Under the pieces are notes generated by a model. The model saw nothing but the letters and a program-made list of their open reading frames with translations. It made no database searches and was not told where the DNA came from. From the IMG/VR virus record IMGVR_UViG_3300045971_000577, positions 124,001 to 188,000 of that record: a stretch of DNA of 64,000 nt; one strand, 5' to 3'. Positions 1,271 through 38,433 of the stretch are shown here, one piece after another. Both the position numbers and the translations under genes were made by a program. Position 1 is the first letter of the stretch. Each line of letters starts with the position of its first letter.

Positions 1271-1517
1271 GACTTTCTCCTATCCGGTTAACTTTAATAT
1301 TCTTCATTCCTGCAAACTTTAATTGCATGTAGGTGTCTGATTCTTTATCGTATGTTAGAATTATAGCAGTCCTCTCCGTGCCTTCTCTGATAGCCACGTC
1401 TAATCCGCTAACTGTTACTCCATTATTTGTTCCCGACATATTCCTATACTCGTCAAATATTACAGACGAAGGTGTCAGGCCTATAGGATATTCGTAACGA
1501 GAATATATTTTCTGCAT
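1263..1517 (-). CDS. hypothetical protein
   Basis: Likely start MQKIY coupled to the upstream stop (TAATG). Confidence 0.5.
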   Translation of the reverse strand: MQKIYSRYEYPIGLTPSSVIFDEYRNMSGTNNGVTVSGLDVAIREGTERTAIILTYDKESDTYMQLKFAGMKNIKVNRIGESHG

Positions 1518-1738
1518 TAGTAAATATCTGCAGCGAATTTGGATGCACGCATCCATGATTCCCAATCTTCGATTGCTTCTTTCTTTGTGTCGCCGCGTCC
1601 AATAAGTCCGTAATCGCGCCAACCTAATCCATTTCTTGTAGCAATGTCGTCACGCGGAACTGCACAATGCCACTTCCCATCTACACGCCAAAATCGTAGA
1701 TTTTCTACGGTCCATTCGCTTTGTGGAATATATCTCAC
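1517..1738 (-). CDS. hypothetical protein
   Basis: ORF coupled to the clamp loader stop. Confidence 0.55.
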   Translation of the reverse strand: MRYIPQSEWTVENLRFWRVDGKWHCAVPRDDIATRNGLGWRDYGLIGRGDTKKEAIEDWESWMRASKFAADIY

Positions 1739-2673
1739 ATCAGTCCCTTTGCAACCATCTCTAGCTCTACAAGTGTTGCTGATAGATTTAGCTCAACGTC
1801 GCCAATCTGTCCGTGTTTTACGAGTCCGTCGCGAATGACAAGAATGCACTTGTTTTCTTTCTCTTCGTTGTCAGCCCACACAGCAAGATTTTCATACATG
1901 AAGCGATAAACGCCTTCGTAATCTTCTTGATTGAACTTTTCGCATACGTGAAGTCTACCTTCTCTATATTTTCCGCTTCGGAATAGCGCGACCATATCGA
2001 TCATTGCGTCTGACGTTTGCTCGCTGTCCGCATTAGGCGATACCAGCTTACTACCGCGTACATTCGCCTGAATCATGCTAATACCGCGCCTTAGATCCGG
2101 GTATGTCTTCTCTACTATTGCTTGCAATGCGTCTGGGTCAATCTCGACATTTTCAGTGTCGAGCACTTCTACCAGTCGTCCGTAGAACTCACCCATGTCG
2201 AGACTTTCAATGTGCATGCGCCCCGTTTCGCAACGTGATTTGATAGCATCTGTAATCTTATTTGGGTGATTGCAAGTTAGCAGGAATCGTACCGAGCTTG
2301 CATACTTTTCCATAGTGCCTCTAAGGACACCCTGGGCTGCTGGAGATAGTCCGTCTGCTTCGTCTAGGAAGACATACTTCATATCACCGTAACCCATTGT
2401 CTCAGAAAATCGAGTAATGGTTTCGCGGATGTAATCGACACCGTTATCTTTAGATGCATTAACTTCGAGAACGTCGAATGGATCGATGTTCAACTCGTTA
2501 AGAAGCAGCTTGATTAGTGTAGACTTACCAGTACCGGGAGACCCGGATAGAAGCATATGTGGTAATGCACCACCTGCTATCCATTGTTCGATCTGTTGTT
2601 TTTGTTTCGGGTCTTTGAATACATACCCGCTCGCCTTAGGTGGGCGATATTTTTCTGTCCATAGATCTTTCAC
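1735..2673 (-). CDS. clamp loader AAA+ subunit (T4 gp44 / RFC-like)
   Basis: LWTEKYRP RFC box, Walker A GSPGTGKS, Walker B LDEAD, SRC motif. Confidence 0.93.
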   Translation of the reverse strand: MKDLWTEKYRPPKASGYVFKDPKQKQQIEQWIAGGALPHMLLSGSPGTGKSTLIKLLLNELNIDPFDVLEVNASKDNGVDYIRETITRFSETMGYGDMKYVFLDEADGLSPAAQGVLRGTMEKYASSVRFLLTCNHPNKITDAIKSRCETGRMHIESLDMGEFYGRLVEVLDTENVEIDPDALQAIVEKTYPDLRRGISMIQANVRGSKLVSPNADSEQTSDAMIDMVALFRSGKYREGRLHVCEKFNQEDYEGVYRFMYENLAVWADNEEKENKCILVIRDGLVKHGQIGDVELNLSATLVELEMVAKGLM

Positions 2674-2720
2674 AGTATACCTTTCTATTTGCAGCAGTGT
2701 AACAAGTTACAAACGAAAGG

Positions 2721-3077
2721 TCAATATTGCGGTGCTCGTTCGTTCGCTGCCGAAAATACTGAGAAAATAGCTGTCTCTGGATCTGTGTCGGAAACTAGCA
2801 TCACACTCTGCGGCCATTCTACGCCCCACAGTTGGGTGTCTGTTCCGTTGTCTTCCTTAACCTTGAGCATTCGAGTCCAACGGCCATTCTCGATAAGAAT
2901 CCACTGCCCGGGTACAATATCGGTAATGTCTTCTCCGACAGAATAAACCTTTCCCCAACGAGGGCGAATACCTTCGCTCTTGCCGTTATCATTAGGGATG
3001 ATAATGCCGTTAACAATGCGCGAACCTCTTTCGAGATCCGTAACCAAAACCTTACCCTTTAGTGCTTTGATACTCAC
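2721..3077 (-). CDS. groES: GroES-like co-chaperonin
   Basis: IKALKGKVLV...GIIIP...GKVYSVG...IVPGQWIL cpn10 pattern. Confidence 0.75.
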   Translation of the reverse strand: MSIKALKGKVLVTDLERGSRIVNGIIIPNDNGKSEGIRPRWGKVYSVGEDITDIVPGQWILIENGRWTRMLKVKEDNGTDTQLWGVEWPQSVMLVSDTDPETAIFSVFSAANERAPQY

Positions 3078-3418
3078 TTAACTTCCTTCACGATAATGTC
3101 ACCAGATGGCAACTCTGTTTCTACTTGTGTCGACTTCGGTACAGGAGGATTTGTCTTGATGACTTTCGGTGTAGGAGTCATATTCATTCCTACAGCACTA
3201 GGTACAGGTCCCTTCAAACCAGTCGCAACAACTGCTTGCTGAACGCGATGATTTTCACGAGCAATTTGTTCGGCAGTCTTTGCAATTTCGCCACCGTTGA
3301 CAAGTTGATCACCGCGAGCGTTTACCTTCATGTTTCCAATTGCAGGTGATTTTTCGTTTTCACGGCGAATAGAATCCATGTCTATTGTTACACCGCGATA
3401 TGTTACATGTTTAGCCAT
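3074..3418 (-). CDS. hypothetical protein
   Basis: ORF coupled to neighbours; GNMKVNARGD motif. Confidence 0.6.
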   Translation of the reverse strand: MAKHVTYRGVTIDMDSIRRENEKSPAIGNMKVNARGDQLVNGGEIAKTAEQIARENHRVQQAVVATGLKGPVPSAVGMNMTPTPKVIKTNPPVPKSTQVETELPSGDIIVKEVK

Positions 3419-3960
3419 TATGCTATTTCCTTTAGATAATCTTTAATGTCGAGTCCGTACTTAATGGAATCGACTTTGTGAACCCCGATAAGATATAGTA
3501 TATACGAGGATACACTTGATCCTCTACCTACACCCCATATAAATTTATTCTTTCTCATGTAATCGATCAAGAATATAAACACACGCAGAAGCATAATCAA
3601 CTCACGCTCTTCGTACATTTTGTATTCTTGATGCACGCGATCAATCTCTTGCTGTACCTTGCATTTATCGAGCAGCCACGCAAGCACGTCTATTTGCTGA
3701 TAGATTACTGGAAAAATCCATTGATCAGCACACTTTTCGTGAAACTCATCGAATGATAATATTTCTTCGGGCGCACCCTCGAAAGTTATTACTTCGGACA
3801 GGAGTTCTGATTGGTGTTCTTGATGTAGTCTTATCTCGTCGTCAAAAATTACATTCAAGTGGCTGATGTTTTTGCCTTGCAATAACAATTCTCGCAGGCT
3901 ATCACTATTTAGTATTGCCTGGCCGTATGTGTTTATTGTTAGATTTTCTTCGGCTTCCAT
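3418..3960 (-). CDS. DNA polymerase III alpha (DnaE)-like N-terminal palm fragment
   Basis: WGVGRGSSVSSYILYLIGVHKVDSIKYGL matches DnaE GPGRGSAAGSLVAY.LGIT.IDP...L; only 180 aa. Confidence 0.8.
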   Translation of the reverse strand: MEAEENLTINTYGQAILNSDSLRELLLQGKNISHLNVIFDDEIRLHQEHQSELLSEVITFEGAPEEILSFDEFHEKCADQWIFPVIYQQIDVLAWLLDKCKVQQEIDRVHQEYKMYEERELIMLLRVFIFLIDYMRKNKFIWGVGRGSSVSSYILYLIGVHKVDSIKYGLDIKDYLKEIA

Positions 3961-9372: not shown

Positions 9373-10539
9373 TTATACAAACGTCTCTGATTTGACGTGC
9401 TTCACTATTTTATAGAATTTCGCAAAATTGTCAAGCTGTTTCGGGGGTGTTCGCGGATTAGATCTGTATACCCAATTATTCGATGTATTTTTCGGACCCA
9501 TAATTAGGTCTGTGGTGCTAAGATCAGTAATAATTTCAGCTGTGTCGAACTTGTTAAGATCACATGTAGTACGACCCTGTGAGTAAGAACTTGTGGGTTG
9601 TTCTACAATAAACTTTCGCCCTGTACCTGTTTCTATCATTGCAAGCATGCCGATATCGCACTTCTTGAACCCATCTGCAAATATCTTTTCGGCATCGTCC
9701 TTTGTAATCTCGATAAACGACATGGGAATCTTAGGCACCGCATTAACTGATACCAGCACAATAGCGCCACGATTAGAAAAGTACCCTGTATTGAAATTGT
9801 TTATCGTGGAGAATTGTGCCTTACCGGCCGCAAGCTCTGTATTAAGTCGTAATGCGGATTCTTCCCTTGTTATGGGTGTTGTTGCCCTATTTGTTACCTT
9901 CAGAATTTTAGCATCTGATTGGTACACATACTTACCCTTACTTACCTCAATAATCTGCCTACGCAAAAATACCTGTGGCTTATATCCGCCAGCAGCTTCA
10001 ATAATAGGTCCATATAGAGATAATACGCCCATGTAGGTACCATCAATGCCAGTTTGTGTCATAACCGTATCACCGATTTGCACATCTTTGATTGAAATCT
10101 TGTCTTCAATCAGTTCTGTGTTCTGTACAGCGGCAACATAGTCGGGAGATGTTACGGGAACCAGTGTCATTGTGGTTTGGCTATCTTCTCTAGCCCATAC
10201 ACACTTCTCTTGGATCAATCCTTCTGTGATACCAGTAACGTGCAGTATCTTTTCCAGATTGTTTGGCGAGATTCTTGACAAGAATCCACGTGGGTCAATG
10301 ATCAACCAAGTTTGGTCTAACGATCCCCAGGTTTTTCTTTCTGTCTTTAGCAATGTGAATCCGGGAAGTGGAACATTCTCGTGTTCCTTTAGCGTATTGT
10401 TACGCTTGGTTAGATTGCTTAATTTTCTTTTCTCGTTTGATGTATTTCCGATGGGTACAATTTCTGCTTCATGCAGCCCGGATGTTGCCGATTTTGTTGA
10501 GTCCCACGCTACTTGAATTTGTCTTGCGATATTGAGCAT
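9373..10539 (-). CDS. hypothetical protein
   Basis: 388-aa ORF with DPRGF motif. Confidence 0.65.
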   Translation of the reverse strand: MLNIARQIQVAWDSTKSATSGLHEAEIVPIGNTSNEKRKLSNLTKRNNTLKEHENVPLPGFTLLKTERKTWGSLDQTWLIIDPRGFLSRISPNNLEKILHVTGITEGLIQEKCVWAREDSQTTMTLVPVTSPDYVAAVQNTELIEDKISIKDVQIGDTVMTQTGIDGTYMGVLSLYGPIIEAAGGYKPQVFLRRQIIEVSKGKYVYQSDAKILKVTNRATTPITREESALRLNTELAAGKAQFSTINNFNTGYFSNRGAIVLVSVNAVPKIPMSFIEITKDDAEKIFADGFKKCDIGMLAMIETGTGRKFIVEQPTSSYSQGRTTCDLNKFDTAEIITDLSTTDLIMGPKNTSNNWVYRSNPRTPPKQLDNFAKFYKIVKHVKSETFV

Positions 10540-35728: not shown

Positions 35729-35771
35729 TTTGATAAACTCCTTATCAGTTAATGCCTAACTCTATGTCAGG
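35729..35771 (-). promoter_or_regulatory. two-hairpin leader motif (copy 1)
   Basis: CCTGAC-ATAGA-GTTAGG then TGATAA-GGAGT-TTATCA. Confidence 0.6.
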
Positions 35772-35780
35772 ACTTAGGTT

Positions 35781-36029
35781 CTATAACACTGCGGCCTTTA
35801 GTACAAGGGCAACCGCATCTTCCCTGGATATATGGAAGTCTCTCAACTCTCCATATCTGTCCTTTATTACCTTTGCTGTAGTTCCTTCTATTACATAAGC
35901 TCTATCAGCAATTTCAAAAAATCGTCTATGTCTGGGATTCTGTTCCAATGGTCGATGTATCACACATATTTTGGCCGGGGCCCTTTTGTGGAAATCTACC
36001 ATTGCATCAGAAAACTCCAGCACGATCAT
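35781..36029 (-). CDS. hypothetical protein
   Basis: ORF in operon. Confidence 0.5.
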   Translation of the reverse strand: MIVLEFSDAMVDFHKRAPAKICVIHRPLEQNPRHRRFFEIADRAYVIEGTTAKVIKDRYGELRDFHISREDAVALVLKAAVL

Positions 36030-36343
36030 TTGATTCCAAGCGCCTTCTTTTGATCTTCGGTTAAGGTTGCCATCAAATCTTCCTTTACCCTTGCAAGGCG
36101 CGCCTTTTCGGCCTCTTTCTTTCTCTCTTTTTCTTCAGCAAGTTTCCGTAGACGATCAGATTCTTTGTGATCGCGCCACCAGGCACCTACTTCGGGATCT
36201 CTCAGGATAATGGCTTCTACAGTGCCGTCATCAAGGGCTTCGAGCTCTCTCAAAAGGGTGCAATTGATTCTTGCCAACTTATCGTTTCTTTCTGTGTAGT
36301 CACGAATGACCCACGCATCATCTCTATCATCTCTGCAGGGCAT
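36026..36343 (-). CDS. hypothetical protein
   Basis: MPCRD...WW..H...D coiled-coil phage protein. Confidence 0.6.
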   Translation of the reverse strand: MPCRDDRDDAWVIRDYTERNDKLARINCTLLRELEALDDGTVEAIILRDPEVGAWWRDHKESDRLRKLAEEKERKKEAEKARLARVKEDLMATLTEDQKKALGIK

Positions 36344-36352
36344 ATAAACTCC

Positions 36353-36616
36353 TTATACGTCTTCCGGGTAATAATTTCTGTCGGGATTTACCTTTGGTAC
36401 TTCCCTACACATCTCACCACCGTATGCTAATACAAATGCCATAGCATCGGCTTCGTCTTCAAATTTTAGGTGAGAGGCAATATTGAGCACTGAAGAATCT
36501 GCCCACCCACCGCTGTAATATTCGGCACCTTCGTCAAATCCTTTCTCGTTGAGATCTTCAGCAAGCTTCAGCAAGCCTTGCCTAGTCAGCGTTGGGATTT
36601 TGACGAAGACAGTCAT
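36353..36616 (-). CDS. small protein, F..E.DA..F.L family
   Basis: LKFEDEADAMAFVLAYG. Confidence 0.55.
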   Translation of the reverse strand: MTVFVKIPTLTRQGLLKLAEDLNEKGFDEGAEYYSGGWADSSVLNIASHLKFEDEADAMAFVLAYGGEMCREVPKVNPDRNYYPEDV

Positions 36617-37671
36617 CCGCGTGCTCTTGCTACCAGCGTGTTGATGATGTGCTTGTGGTCACCGTAGATCAGTTCTTCCATCTTGTCGATTTCGGACAAC
36701 TTGAACCACTTGGCCTTCTTAGCATCGTCGGACCCCTTCACACGGGGCAGTTTACCGTCACCACCAGTAAGTTCGATAAGATATGCCATAGTGATGGTAC
36801 GACCACGCAAATCGCGATCAGGATGGTCAAATGTTTCGTTGTAGGTAATACCCTTACGAAGCACGATTTCTGGAACCTTGATCTTGGTTTCTTCCACCAA
36901 CTCGCGGATAACGCAATCTGCCAAACGTTCCTTGGGATTGATGAATCCACCCGGGAGTGCCCAAAGGCCCTTGCCCGGAGCGTAACCGCGTTGGATAAGC
37001 AGGATGTGGCCGCCTTGGATAACCACTGCATCAGTAGTCTGGAATACAGGCACAAAAGGTGCAGATTCCCAGGACTTGTGATAGTCCTTGTAGAAAATGT
37101 ACTCTTCAACCATGTCGCTGTATCCGGGAGTATTTCTCCAAGATTTCATGTATTCGAATACTGCGGCAGGAACTGCACCCTGGATGTAATCCAGGTGGCC
37201 TTCGAAGTAGAGTTCGCGCACCTTAGTGGCGTCGATTGGCTGTGAACCGTGTTCGACAAATCCGTTCAGTGGAATAAAGTCCCACTCCGGGAATGCATGG
37301 TTGTACCAGCTGGAATCGTCCTTGTCGTAACCCATGATTGCGATATCAGCATCGTCGATATCAGGGCTGTCAGTCTTCACCACGGATTGCACGTTGCTAA
37401 TCCAGTTGTTGTTGCTGTACTTGAAGTCTCGCAGAGGATAGATCTCGAACTGAGCATTTGGCCGCACAGCTTCGATTGCACTCGTAATCATTTCCTTACG
37501 TTCAGCAAACTTGAACGGATTCTTCGGAGTGCGGGGCTGGAATGAACTGCCGACGAGAATGATTACCTTTTCGGCAATATCCAGGGCTTGGAGGAAGTTG
37601 GCAAGATGCCCGTTGTGGGCGGATTGAAATCGTCCGATGAGGACGACACGCTTGTATCGTTTTATTGACAT
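36613..37671 (-). CDS. nadM: bifunctional NMN adenylyltransferase / Nudix ADP-ribose pyrophosphatase
   Basis: IGRFQSAHNGH (HxGH), KNPF...ER, Nudix box GG.....E......RELVEET, SDDA. Confidence 0.95.
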   Translation of the reverse strand: MSIKRYKRVVLIGRFQSAHNGHLANFLQALDIAEKVIILVGSSFQPRTPKNPFKFAERKEMITSAIEAVRPNAQFEIYPLRDFKYSNNNWISNVQSVVKTDSPDIDDADIAIMGYDKDDSSWYNHAFPEWDFIPLNGFVEHGSQPIDATKVRELYFEGHLDYIQGAVPAAVFEYMKSWRNTPGYSDMVEEYIFYKDYHKSWESAPFVPVFQTTDAVVIQGGHILLIQRGYAPGKGLWALPGGFINPKERLADCVIRELVEETKIKVPEIVLRKGITYNETFDHPDRDLRGRTITMAYLIELTGGDGKLPRVKGSDDAKKAKWFKLSEIDKMEELIYGDHKHIINTLVARARG

Positions 37672-37713
37672 ATTTTGGCTCCCAAAATAAATAAGTTGAA
37701 CAGTCTGTCTGTT
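37671..37713 (-). promoter_or_regulatory. two-hairpin leader motif (copy 2)
   Basis: AACAG-ACAGA-CTGTT then TATTTTG-GGAGC-CAAAATA. Confidence 0.6.
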
Positions 37714-37824: not shown

Positions 37825-38433
37825 ATGTATTTAGCATACACTTATTTCGTTCGAAATAAAATTACAGATCAATTCTATTATGGATCTCGTTATAAAAATG
37901 TAAAATATAATAGATCGGCAATAAACGACTTGTGGATATATTATTTTACATCTTCAGATAGTGTCCTCAGACTTGTTGATCTTTACGGTAAAAAATCATT
38001 CGAAACTTCTATAGTATATGAATCTAATGATTACGATGCATGTTATTGGAAAGAGCAAACGCTTATATCAGAGAATATAGATAATATACTATGTCTCAAT
38101 AAGCATTATACTCGAGACGGAAAAGTCAAGTTTCTCCGAGCAGGGATAGTGTTATCGGACGAAACTAAAAATAAGATGTCGGCGGCGAAGAAGGGAAAAT
38201 CTCACTCTACTGAGCACAATAGAAAAGTATCTGTGTCTCTAAAACAAAAATATAACTCAGATATCAAACCAAAATCAACACGATTTAGAAAATCTGCCAC
38301 AGAAGAAACAAAGCTAAAAATGTCACAAGCCAATATTCTACGGCCGCGACTCGAATGCATTCATTGCGGAAACAGATATGATCCGGGAAACTATAACAGA
38401 TATCACGGACCAAAATGTAAAATGAATAGATAG
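37825..38433 (+). CDS. GIY-YIG-like homing endonuclease with NUMOD3 repeats
   Basis: YTY.......QFYYGSR...YFTSS; SDETKNKMSAAKKG, HSTEHNRKVS; C-terminal CxxC. Confidence 0.75.
   Translation: MYLAYTYFVRNKITDQFYYGSRYKNVKYNRSAINDLWIYYFTSSDSVLRLVDLYGKKSFETSIVYESNDYDACYWKEQTLISENIDNILCLNKHYTRDGKVKFLRAGIVLSDETKNKMSAAKKGKSHSTEHNRKVSVSLKQKYNSDIKPKSTRFRKSATEETKLKMSQANILRPRLECIHCGNRYDPGNYNRYHGPKCKMNR

Follow-up and report, generated by a model that had tools for sequence, protein, structure and literature searches.

A conserved two-hairpin RNA leader motif precedes NAD-salvage genes in phages and bacteria

Structured leaders of the nadM and nadV genes

We examined a 64,000-nt stretch of viral DNA (the window; positions 124,001 to 188,000 of IMG/VR record IMGVR_UViG_3300045971_000577) that contains nadM and nadV in one operon on the minus strand. 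Each gene is preceded by two small hairpins (H1 and H2) joined by a short linker. H1 has a variable stem and an A-N-A/G-G-A pentaloop, whereas H2 has a variable stem and carries the Shine-Dalgarno (SD) sequence in a GGAGY-type pentaloop, with the start codon in or just after its 3′ arm. The features, in the order of transcription, are as follows.

37754-37726 (−): predicted sigma-70-like promoter upstream of nadM, TTGACA (37754-37749), 17 nt, TAACAT (37731-37726)
37713-37699 (−): nadM leader H1, AACAG-ACAGA-CTGTT (loop 37708-37704)
37698-37690 (−): nadM leader linker, CAACTTATT, unpaired
37689-37671 (−): nadM leader H2, TATTTTG-GGAGC-CAAAATA (SD in the loop, 37682-37678); its last A is the A of the ATG (37671-37669)
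37671-36613 (−): nadM-Nudix gene (bifunctional NMN adenylyltransferase / ADP-ribose pyrophosphatase), 352 aa
36616-35781 (−): three small ORFs of unknown function, orf87 (36616-36353), orf105 (36343-36026) and orf82 (36029-35781)
36359-36341 (−): orf105 start-site hairpin, CGTATAA-GGAGT-TTATATG, H2-like only, with no H1
35771-35755 (−): nadV leader H1, CCTGAC-ATAGA-GTTAGG (loop 35765-35761)
35754-35748 (−): nadV leader linker, CATTAAC
35747-35731 (−): nadV leader H2, TGATAA-GGAGT-TTATCA (SD in the loop, 35741-35737); the ATG (35728-35726) lies 2 nt after the stem
35728-34340 (−): nadV gene (nicotinamide phosphoribosyltransferase), 462 aa

The initial annotation had reported these paired hairpins in front of both genes, with unrelated stems but shared loops, and this observation is confirmed by direct reading of the sequence. 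The gene identities are supported by Pfam, as nadV matched NAPRTase (1.4e-56) and NAMPT_N (2.4e-31), and nadM matched CTP_transf_like and NUDIX. The nadM product is 40-45% identical to annotated phage NadM-Nudix proteins and the nadV product is up to 58% identical to phage NadV proteins. Together with their homology to annotated bacterial proteins, these matches identify the two genes as a NadV-NadM salvage module of the NARP2 pathway (bioRxiv 10.1101/2024.02.11.579819). The order nadM, three ORFs of about 85, 106 and 80 aa, and nadV is conserved in close relatives. The small ORFs gave no Pfam hits, and only phrog_11759 (unknown function) matched orf105. A megablast search of the region against cultured phages gave no match. 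The promoter scan gave 10 of 12 matches for the hexamers upstream of nadM, placing the predicted transcript start a few nucleotides before H1, and TTGACC/TTGACA-N17-TATACT-type hexamers are conserved at the same place in relatives; promoter function is inferred from sequence alone.

Taken alone, the hairpins of the window are thermodynamically weak. Their stabilities are −3 to −5 kcal/mol, their folding z-scores are only −1.6 and −2.0 (0.15 for the orf105 hairpin), and they ranked 62 and 175 among 578 gene starts. However, the composite is unique in the genome. A descriptor search found only these two leaders with both stems of at least 5 bp next to a start codon, and a covariance model found exactly these two in the whole 369,145-bp genome, even at E≤10. 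The initial annotation had noticed the pair of hairpins before no other gene in the window, to which we add one correction, that orf105 of the same operon carries the SD-pentaloop hairpin without H1. This is one of only three GGAGN-pentaloop hairpins at gene starts in the whole genome, all in this operon, and it is kept in one relative (L027) as ACTAA-GGAGA-TTAGT. Because the flanks around GGAG are A/T-rich, we considered whether composition could account for the SD hairpins; by our estimate about 0.3 such 6-bp stems would be expected among the 104 GGAG-type sites, against the three seen. We also considered whether H1 is a repeated element of the genome. There are 119 ANNGA hairpins, no more than our estimate of the chance expectation, and none of the others resembles the composite.

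Covariation and gene association of the motif

Absence of covariation in homologous leaders, or equal frequency before unrelated genes, had been named in advance as outcomes that would count against the motif; neither was found. The decisive evidence is comparative. In homologous leaders from IMG/VR relatives, both stems change by compensatory substitutions while the loops stay. The nadM leaders keep an ANAGA loop in H1 with entirely different stems, and H2 shows a compensatory change in relative L028 (TAATTG/CAATTA), with different stems in distant relatives. In relatives the nadV H1 is CC[Y/A]RRC-ANNGA-GYYRGG with compensatory changes, and at 53-63% protein identity the stems are unrelated. 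Compensatory variants of the nadV H2 were seen in relatives L005 (TTTAA/TTAAA), L016 (ATGTAAA/TTTACAT), L047 and L048, and the length of the nadV linker varies among relatives.

To measure this covariation, we used a plain MAFFT alignment of leaders chosen only by gene position. In this alignment 84.9% of cells pair, whereas shuffles gave 58% (0 of 500 reached the observed value) and slid registers gave 24-50%. Of 12 pairs, 11 show double-sided changes. RNAalifold independently predicted H1 and H2. The pattern held on a wider alignment fitted to a model and on a 54-sequence alignment of phage and bacterial leaders (92.3% against 52.9%), although the latter was assembled with a descriptor that required stems, such that its pairing percentage is inflated by selection. 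Across alignments, 85-92% of cells were paired against 51-58% in shuffles. MAFFT alignment of the nadV and nadM leaders together misaligned the H1 loops, and for joint alignments the sequences were cut flush at the loop. Among 136 instances, G-U pairs make up 103 of 1586 stem pairs and all hits lie on the coding strand, both of which point to RNA rather than duplex DNA.

The same 136 instances define the element. The H1 loop consensus is roughly R-N-R-G-A, looser than the AYAGA proposed in the initial annotation, with a G-C closing pair in 117 of 136. The linker is 5-18 nt long, C/A-rich and G-poor, with no invariant position. The SD sequence is in the H2 loop and the AUG lies from −4 to +5 relative to the end of the H2 3′ arm in all 136 instances. 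In GC-rich bacteria H2 is a strong stem containing the AUG, for example CCGTGAG-GGATT-CTCATGG. H1 loops drift by lineage, being ANNGA in the clade of the window, GGAGA in Caulobacter and GGAGT in phage DLP_6. H1 is missing in some phages that keep H2; H2 alone is kept before nadM and nadV of phages X1 and ACP17, and in a shorter-stemmed, less canonical form in the KVP40-like phage phi-ST2.

In nine other complete phage genomes of 146-518 kb, nearly all covariance model matches, and in all but one genome the best one, are nadM or nadV leaders. In RsoM2USA the only match to the model built mainly from phage sequences is at a non-NAD gene (RsoM2USA_356, encoding a protein that we took by eye for a tail-tube protein). 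We judged this match to be chance, as we did position 10335 of record B23, which lies inside a gene, position 216760 of G003 (a complete megaphage genome), which is H2-like only, and hits in G244 and G476, which are not NAD genes. The sequence GGGATAGACCC occurs once per record in five viral records, always before nadM, and two of these records are complete genomes of about 517 kb. In 55 further viral NadM loci, 27 hits precede nadM, 18 precede nadV and 1 precedes nadA.

The element is not specific to phages, as it also precedes nadM and nadV in Xanthomonas, Burkholderia, Ralstonia, Caulobacter and other bacteria. The model built mainly from phage sequences was too weak for whole bacterial genomes and was replaced by a further model. 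Five bacterial genomes have exactly two strong hits each. About 600 sampled bacterial genomes gave hits at nadM-nadV where checked and same-strand pairs about 1.1 kb apart elsewhere, plus two weak hits that are likely false. Hosts range from cyanobacteria to alpha-, beta-, gamma- and epsilon-type proteobacteria.

Comparison with known RNA elements

Searches against Rfam (4227 models, release 15) gave no gathering-level hits in the window, and nothing overlapped the leaders at E≤10 in phage or bacterial loci. We found no paper describing the motif. The initial annotation had not recognized it as a described NAD riboswitch, in agreement with these results. The NAD+-I (nadA motif) and NAD+-II (pnuC motif) riboswitches (PMC6859854, PMC7749635, PMC7297122) are also cis elements in 5′ leaders of NAD-related genes with the SD sequence involved in the regulated structure, and one instance of the present motif precedes nadA. 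However, NAD+-I has tandem bulged stem-loops with a conserved ACANCCCC bulge, whereas both hairpins here are simple, with no bulge in most instances. NAD+-II has a stem with a conserved internal loop and a pseudoknot onto the SD sequence, whereas the present motif has no internal loop and no conserved linker or loop complement to the SD. The distribution also differs, being Proteobacteria and phages rather than Acidobacteria and Streptococcus.

The guanidine-II riboswitch (mini-ykkC motif) likewise has two very small hairpins with variable, covarying stems and conserved loops, a linker of variable length and a ribosome-binding site at the second hairpin, with translational control. Its two loops are identical ACGR tetraloops that pair with each other, whereas the pentaloops here (A-N-A-G-A and G-G-A-G-Y) differ and are not complementary, and it is associated with guanidine export rather than NAD synthesis. 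Autogenous translational operators provide another comparison, including the E. coli thrS operator (two hairpins bound by dimeric ThrRS next to the SD), the phage T4 gp43 and RegA operators, and phage Mu Com/mom (a protein-bound hairpin next to an SD/AUG-sequestering hairpin). In each, a hairpin recognized through its loop sits just upstream of, or includes, the ribosome-binding site, and phage and bacterial enzymes control their own translation in this way. There is no sequence relationship with these operators, no binding protein has been identified here, and the present element is shared by two or three different genes and by very distant genomes. The PyrR binding loop and lambda boxB are also short stems with purine-rich pentaloops read by proteins, in which stems vary while loops are kept. 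AGAGA between C-G pairs resembles the PyrR site and GAAGA is the boxB loop, although this resemblance is only a lead; those elements act on transcription attenuation or antitermination, their genes and proteins are different, and no Rfam PyrR match was found.

Possible roles in control of NAD synthesis

We are highly confident that the two leaders are copies of a real conserved RNA structure. Our analysis establishes this structure, its covariation, its nearly exclusive association with NAD-synthesis genes, and its spread across phages and bacteria. That it acts on translation, that H1 is a recognition site and that NadM-Nudix is the reader are inferences, as is binding of any factor. Placement of the SD sequence and start codon in H2, whose pairs covary, makes an action on translation initiation likely. 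The element is most likely a pathway-specific translational operator of NAD-synthesis genes, nadM and nadV here and also nadA in one viral contig. In our model H2 would be the gate, such that initiation would require this hairpin to open or be reshaped, although any gating in this phage must be mild given the weak hairpins of the window. H1 would be the specificity element, with a freely varying stem but a retained G-C closing pair and loop. Our tentative best guess is that a factor travelling with the gene cassette reads H1, possibly together with the H2 loop. We consider a protein and a metabolite about equally probable as the reader. In favor of a protein, nothing outside the loops is conserved, the linker varies in length and sequence, H1 loops drift by lineage, and H1 is missing in some phages that keep H2. 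NadM-Nudix is the leading protein candidate but is itself a tentative one. It is the only protein found in every motif-bearing genome examined, although this is partly a result of sampling because most loci were fetched by searching with NadM or NadV; the model-first scans of bacterial genomes are not biased in this way. The megaphage genome G003 has the motif and nadM but no nadV, and the range of hosts argues against a host-specific protein. NadM-Nudix has no domain recognizable by Pfam as RNA-binding. On this reading the enzyme would feed back on its own synthesis and that of its pathway partners, perhaps depending on whether its nucleotide sites are occupied. The small ORFs between nadM and nadV were rejected as the regulator since they are absent from bacterial operons and from LucasX and have no informative family hits. 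The interpretation in the initial annotation, a pathway-specific translational operator or metabolite-responsive element perhaps bound by NadM-Nudix, is therefore partly supported, in that a shared, pathway-specific structured leader was found.

The principal alternative, which we consider possible but less likely, is a small riboswitch in which an NAD-pathway metabolite (NAD+, NMN, ADP-ribose, nicotinamide or PRPP) binds the H1 loop, perhaps docked on the H2 loop, and changes access to the SD and start codon. A small-molecule reader would explain equally well why nadA, nadM and nadV each have their own copy and why the element occurs in unrelated lineages, an expression platform is built in, and the guanidine-II riboswitch is a precedent. 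However, only about 4-5 unpaired positions outside the SD are conserved, there is no internal loop, junction or pseudoknot, and linker length and sequence are free. Variation of H1 loop positions 1-3 by lineage and the absence of H1 in some phages would be unusual for ligand-contacting nucleotides. The loops are not complementary, ruling out a loop-loop kissing pair, and inspection revealed no conserved alternative pairing that would act as a switch; linker CTCAC can pair with H2 GTGAG in some Xanthomonas leaders, but this is not general. It is also possible, though unlikely, that the element is passive, with H1 protecting the mRNA from 5′-end-dependent decay, H2 fixing a low or defined translation rate, and the cassette carrying both between genomes. 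Consistent with this view, H1 lies within a few nucleotides of the predicted transcript start in the nadM leader of the window and in several bacterial and megaphage leaders, the unstructured, G-poor linker is like a ribosome standby region, and H2 occurs alone in the cases described above. Yet a protective hairpin does not need a conserved loop and closing pair, whereas G-A-N-A-G-A-C is kept from cyanophages to Burkholderia while stems vary freely, the nadV copy is internal to the operon in many genomes, and the element is restricted to NAD genes.

The remaining readings fit poorly. The initial annotation had pointed out that hairpins with GGA loops are CsrA/RsmA targets. The H2 loop starts with GGA in nearly all instances, H1 lies a short distance upstream, and some H1 loops (ACGGA, ATGGA, AGGGA, AAGGA) are of the RsmE/CsrA type. 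However, only about 11 of 136 H1 loops contain GGA, such that it is lacking in about 92% of instances including the dominant ACAGA and ATAGA. The motif also occurs in phages of cyanobacteria and in bacterial groups of very different regulatory make-up, and it is confined to NAD genes, unlike a global regulon. We consider this reading very unlikely. A DNA-level signal or chance resemblance is less likely still. H1 is an inverted repeat close to a promoter-like site before nadM, and NrtR controls nadM-nadV in Synechocystis (PMC2330246), but that paper does not list Xanthomonas, Burkholderia or Ralstonia. Moreover, the arms vary and covary, with G-U pairs maintaining the stems, while the non-palindromic center is conserved, which is the reverse of a dimeric operator. 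The terminator scan found nothing at H1 or H2, and the bases after H1 are C/A-rich with no T-run. Chance is excluded by the covariation and the model searches.

These results define a compact element of about 45 nt, with dozens of natural compensatory variants and a working covariance model, that accompanies NAD-synthesis genes across very distant genomes. The element bears on how bacteria outside the NrtR, NadR and NiaR regulons control the NadV-NadM nicotinamide salvage route, and on how phages time the NAD-reconstitution genes that defeat NAD-depleting defense systems, neither of which is known. If the reader is NadM-Nudix, this is a new case of a metabolic enzyme acting as an RNA-binding regulator. 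If the reader is a metabolite, it is a new riboswitch class for a central cofactor. In the latter case, which is not excluded but which we consider doubtful, the motif would be a third, very small class of NAD-pathway riboswitch shared by bacteria and phages, sensing NAD+ itself or a breakdown product or precursor such as ADP-ribose, nicotinamide or NMN. In phages it would let the NARP2 genes respond directly to the NAD+ collapse caused by bacterial NAD-degrading defense systems, and would thus be an RNA sensor of host immunity.

Two hairpin leaders in the nadM-nadV region

The 369,145-bp virus record from which bases 124001-188000 were examined has direct terminal repeats and is rated complete. 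The genes at this locus, with their Pfam assignments, are as follows.
37671-36613, minus strand, nadM-Nudix, 352 aa, cytidylyltransferase-like plus NUDIX
36616-36353, minus strand, small ORF of unknown function
36343-36026, minus strand, small ORF of unknown function (orf105)
36029-35781, minus strand, small ORF of unknown function
35728-34340, minus strand, nadV, 462 aa, NAPRTase plus NAMPT_N

Together nadV and nadM form the nicotinamide salvage route that the phage literature calls NARP2. A sigma-70-like site (TTGACA-17-TAACAT, 37754-37726) lies upstream of nadM. A homing-endonuclease-like ORF (37825-38433, plus strand; Pfam NUMOD3, phrog_314) diverges from nadM. Another ORF, about 84 kb upstream of the window start, has an almost identical ribosome-binding context (aatgctacaaGGAGcaatcagctATG), suggesting a second copy of this gene family.

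The initial annotation had described a shared leader of two hairpins, here called H1 (upstream) and H2 (containing the Shine-Dalgarno (SD) sequence in its loop), in front of both NAD genes. Both leaders read exactly as it had written them.
nadV leader, minus strand: H1 CCTGAC-ATAGA-GTTAGG (35771-35755), linker CATTAAC, H2 TGATAA-GGAGT-TTATCA (35747-35731), AA, ATG
nadM leader, minus strand: H1 AACAG-ACAGA-CTGTT (37713-37699), linker CAACTTATT, H2 TATTTTG-GGAGC-CAAAATA (37689-37671), the last A of the stem being the A of the ATG

On their own the hairpins are weak, as folding z-scores were only -1.6 and -2.0 and their local folding energies ranked 62nd and 175th among 578 predicted gene starts. 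Even so, they are unusual within the genome. Of 22 GGAGN-pentaloop hairpins with at least 5 bp, only three sit at a gene start, and all three are in this operon (nadM, nadV and orf105). The orf105 hairpin (CGTATAA-GGAGT-TTATATG, 36359-36341, minus strand) lacks the upstream H1, and it is kept with a compensatory change in the relative L027 (ACTAA-GGAGA-TTAGT); only phrog_11759 matched the orf105 protein. The full composite of H1, linker, H2 and start codon occurs only twice with both stems of at least 5 bp, whereas H1-like hairpins taken alone are no commoner than our estimate of chance. We also found that a −10-like hexamer overlaps the stop codon of the ORF before nadV, 5-9 nt upstream of H1 (TATAGA at 35780-35785; TATAGT, TATAAC or TATACT at the homologous positions in the relatives L002-L017). 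Thus nadV may have its own promoter that puts H1 at the 5′ end of a transcript, although a promoter scan did not call this site in the window.

Covariation and specificity in phage genomes

IMG/VR contains relatives with NadV 78-89% and NadM 70-79% identical to the proteins of the window, as well as more distant ones. Leaders were taken purely by their position in front of the homologous gene, and they showed the same architecture with changed stems. The nadV H1 is CC[Y/A]RRC-ANNGA-GYYRGG, with T-A, C-G and A-T exchanges. The nadM H1 keeps ACAGA, ATAGA, AGAGA or AAAGA on stems as different as GCAGAG/CTCTGC, TGCAATAA/TTATTGCA and GGG/CCC. H2 changes from GATAA/TTATC to TTTAA/TTAAA or ATGTAAA/TTTACAT, and from TATTTG/CAAATA to TAATTG/CAATTA, TTGGAA/TTCCAA or ATATTG/CAATAT. 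In a MAFFT alignment of 31 sequences (A2), 84.9% of cells pair, compared with 58.4% in shuffles (0 of 500 reached the observed value) and 24-50% in slid registers, and 11 of 12 pairs show double-sided changes. RNAalifold, given no structure, returned H1 and H2. It also added a G1-Y5 pair across the H2 loop, which would explain why the fifth loop base is a pyrimidine.

A covariance model built from A2 found exactly two matches in the whole genome at E<=10, the nadV leader (52.2 bits) and the nadM leader (36.3 bits). The 11-mer GGGATAGACCC occurs once in each of five viral records, two of which are complete genomes of about 517 kb, and always just upstream of nadM. A reversed-pattern control gave no hits. 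In two of these records, NadV genes only 53-54% identical to that of the window carry the motif with unrelated stems.

Cultured phages also carry the motif: Synechococcus phage B23 (both genes), Xanthomonas phages LucasX and RTH11, Roseobacter phage DSS3P8, Ralstonia phage RSP15 (H1 loops AGGGA and ACGGA) and Synechococcus phage BUCT-ZZ01 (H1 loop AAAGA). Whole-genome scans of nine other phage genomes returned these leaders as nearly all matches, and as the best match in all but one genome. The three weak extras look like chance, among them the only match in Ralstonia phage RsoM2USA (L062) to R2, a model built mainly from phage sequences. In RsoM2USA, a CGATAA-ATAGA-TTATCG hairpin precedes gene 356, which is unrelated to NAD and whose product, judged by eye alone, looks like a tail-tube protein. 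This model hit was weak (E 0.12) and was judged to be chance; the nadM and nadV leaders of this phage have non-canonical H1 loops.

Some phages depart from the full architecture. X1, XacN1 and ACP17 keep only H2, whereas the KVP40-like phage phi-ST2 has only a short-stemmed H2-like hairpin (4 bp with loop GAG, or 3 bp with GGAGC). Salicola phage SCTP-2 (L153) has GGC-GATAGA-GCC but no clear H2. In this phage a nearly identical leader of about 38 nt (GGCGATAGAGCCAAACTAYAATAGGAGATAAGACT) precedes both nadM and nadV (upstream of locus positions 379 and 1489), with the ATAGA hairpin but no evident second hairpin, which looks like a recent duplication of the leader. In Stenotrophomonas phage DLP_6 (L056), upstream of nadM at locus position 337, the upstream hairpin has the same loop as the SD hairpin (GAAGC-GGAGT-GCTTC followed by AGGAA-GGAGT-TTCCT), while the H1 loop in Caulobacter-type bacterial leaders is GGAGA. 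Thus the two loops can converge.

Distribution beyond phages

The element is not phage-specific. We retrieved eighty bacterial NadM-Nudix loci, from Ralstonia, Burkholderia, Xanthomonas, Stenotrophomonas, Lysobacter, Caulobacter, Thiothrix, a Campylobacterales genome and others. These contain 99 composite instances, typically two per locus, one before nadM and one before the next gene, which is nadV. Typical forms are GGG-ACAGA-CCC ... CCGTGAG-GGATT-CTCATGG, in which the ATG is inside the stem, and CCGGCGG-ACAGA-CCGCCGG ... GAA-GGAGC-TTC ... ATG. The linker is C/A-rich and G-poor, with no conserved position.

Features of the leader over 136 distinct instances
H1 loop: ACAGA 58, ATAGA 44, AGAGA 9, AAAGA 8, others 17
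H1 closing pair: G-C in 117
H2 loop: GGAGC 75, GGATT 22, GGAGT 20, others 19
Linker length: 5-18 nt
AUG position from the end of the H2 3′ arm: −4 to +5
G-U pairs in stems: 103 of 1586

A third model (R3) was built from 54 phage and bacterial sequences. Because these sequences were picked with a descriptor that requires stems, the 92% pairing in that alignment is partly by construction. R3 gave exactly two strong hits in each of five bacterial genomes, where the next best hit had E>=0.85. R3 was then applied to samples of 150 genomes each. The gammaproteobacterial sample gave one further genome with two hits, and the Burkholderiales sample gave one further genome with two hits plus one weak false hit. 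In the order of the Xanthomonas genome there were 23 further genomes, with paired hits about 1.1 kb apart. Five of the six with an apparent single hit were inspected, and in all five both genes lie at the locus and both leaders show the motif wherever they fall inside the fetched stretch. The alphaproteobacterial sample gave one weak false hit only.

In 55 further viral NadM loci, 27 hits precede nadM, 18 precede nadV and one precedes a quinolinate synthase gene (Pfam NadA, 1.1e-83). This last contig (L229, IMGVR_UViG_3300020045_011377, positions 1365-3630) carries the motif before three NAD genes in a row, nadA, nadM and nadV. Five more hits precede small ORFs of unknown function that sit just upstream of nadM, in the viral contigs L190 (2002-2501), L210 (2106-2501), L217 (1880-2247), L200 (2160-2501) and L214 (2208-2415). 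The ORFs of L190 and L210 are distant homologues of each other (phrog_7661 and phrog_33851).

Candidate readers and the inferred mode of action

We next considered whether the leader corresponds to a described element. No Rfam 15 family matched the leaders in phage or bacterial loci, either at gathering thresholds or at E<=10, and full-text literature searches found no description of an RNA element for nadV or nadM. The NrtR paper (PMC2330246) does not cover the bacterial groups that carry the motif. The element is not a terminator, since no T-run follows H1 and a terminator scan was negative. Nor is it a duplex-DNA operator, as the arms covary, G-U pairs maintain the stems and the asymmetric centre is conserved. 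The initial annotation had pointed out that GGA-loop hairpins are CsrA/RsmA targets; however, the leader is not a good CsrA site because GGA occurs in only about 8% of H1 loops.

Our analysis establishes the structure, its conservation and its gene association, whereas its action on translation, the role of H1 in recognition and any binding by a protein or metabolite are inferred. H2 places the SD sequence in a 5-nt loop and the start codon in or next to the stem; in this view the 30S subunit must open or remodel it. This stem is strong in GC-rich bacteria and weak in this A/T-rich phage. H1 keeps only its closing pair and loop, which is the signature of a recognition hairpin. As the element would work in phages of cyanobacteria and of alpha-, beta- and gamma-proteobacteria, and in bacteria of several classes, its reader should be universal, carried by the cassette, or a metabolite.

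A complete megaphage genome has the motif and nadM but no nadV, and thus NadM-Nudix is the only protein common to all motif-bearing genomes seen. Lineage-specific drift of the H1 loop, the free linker and the modular loss of H1 lean towards a protein reader. Conversely, the shared control of nadA, nadM and nadV inferred here, together with the precedent of very small two-hairpin riboswitches, keeps direct metabolite sensing a serious rival. We tentatively favor an operator read by a cassette-encoded protein (NadM-Nudix), although this reading falls short of even odds. A riboswitch is possible but less likely, a passive stability and translation element is less likely still, and the remaining explanations are improbable.

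The observation made in the initial annotation is therefore confirmed, and it turns out to be one instance of a widespread element. Its interpretation as a pathway-specific translational operator or metabolite-responsive element, perhaps bound by NadM-Nudix, was supported in part, as the pathway-specific, translational character is well supported whereas the signal that is read could be assigned only tentatively. From these data we conclude that the two leaders belong to an apparently undescribed RNA leader motif for NAD-synthesis genes.
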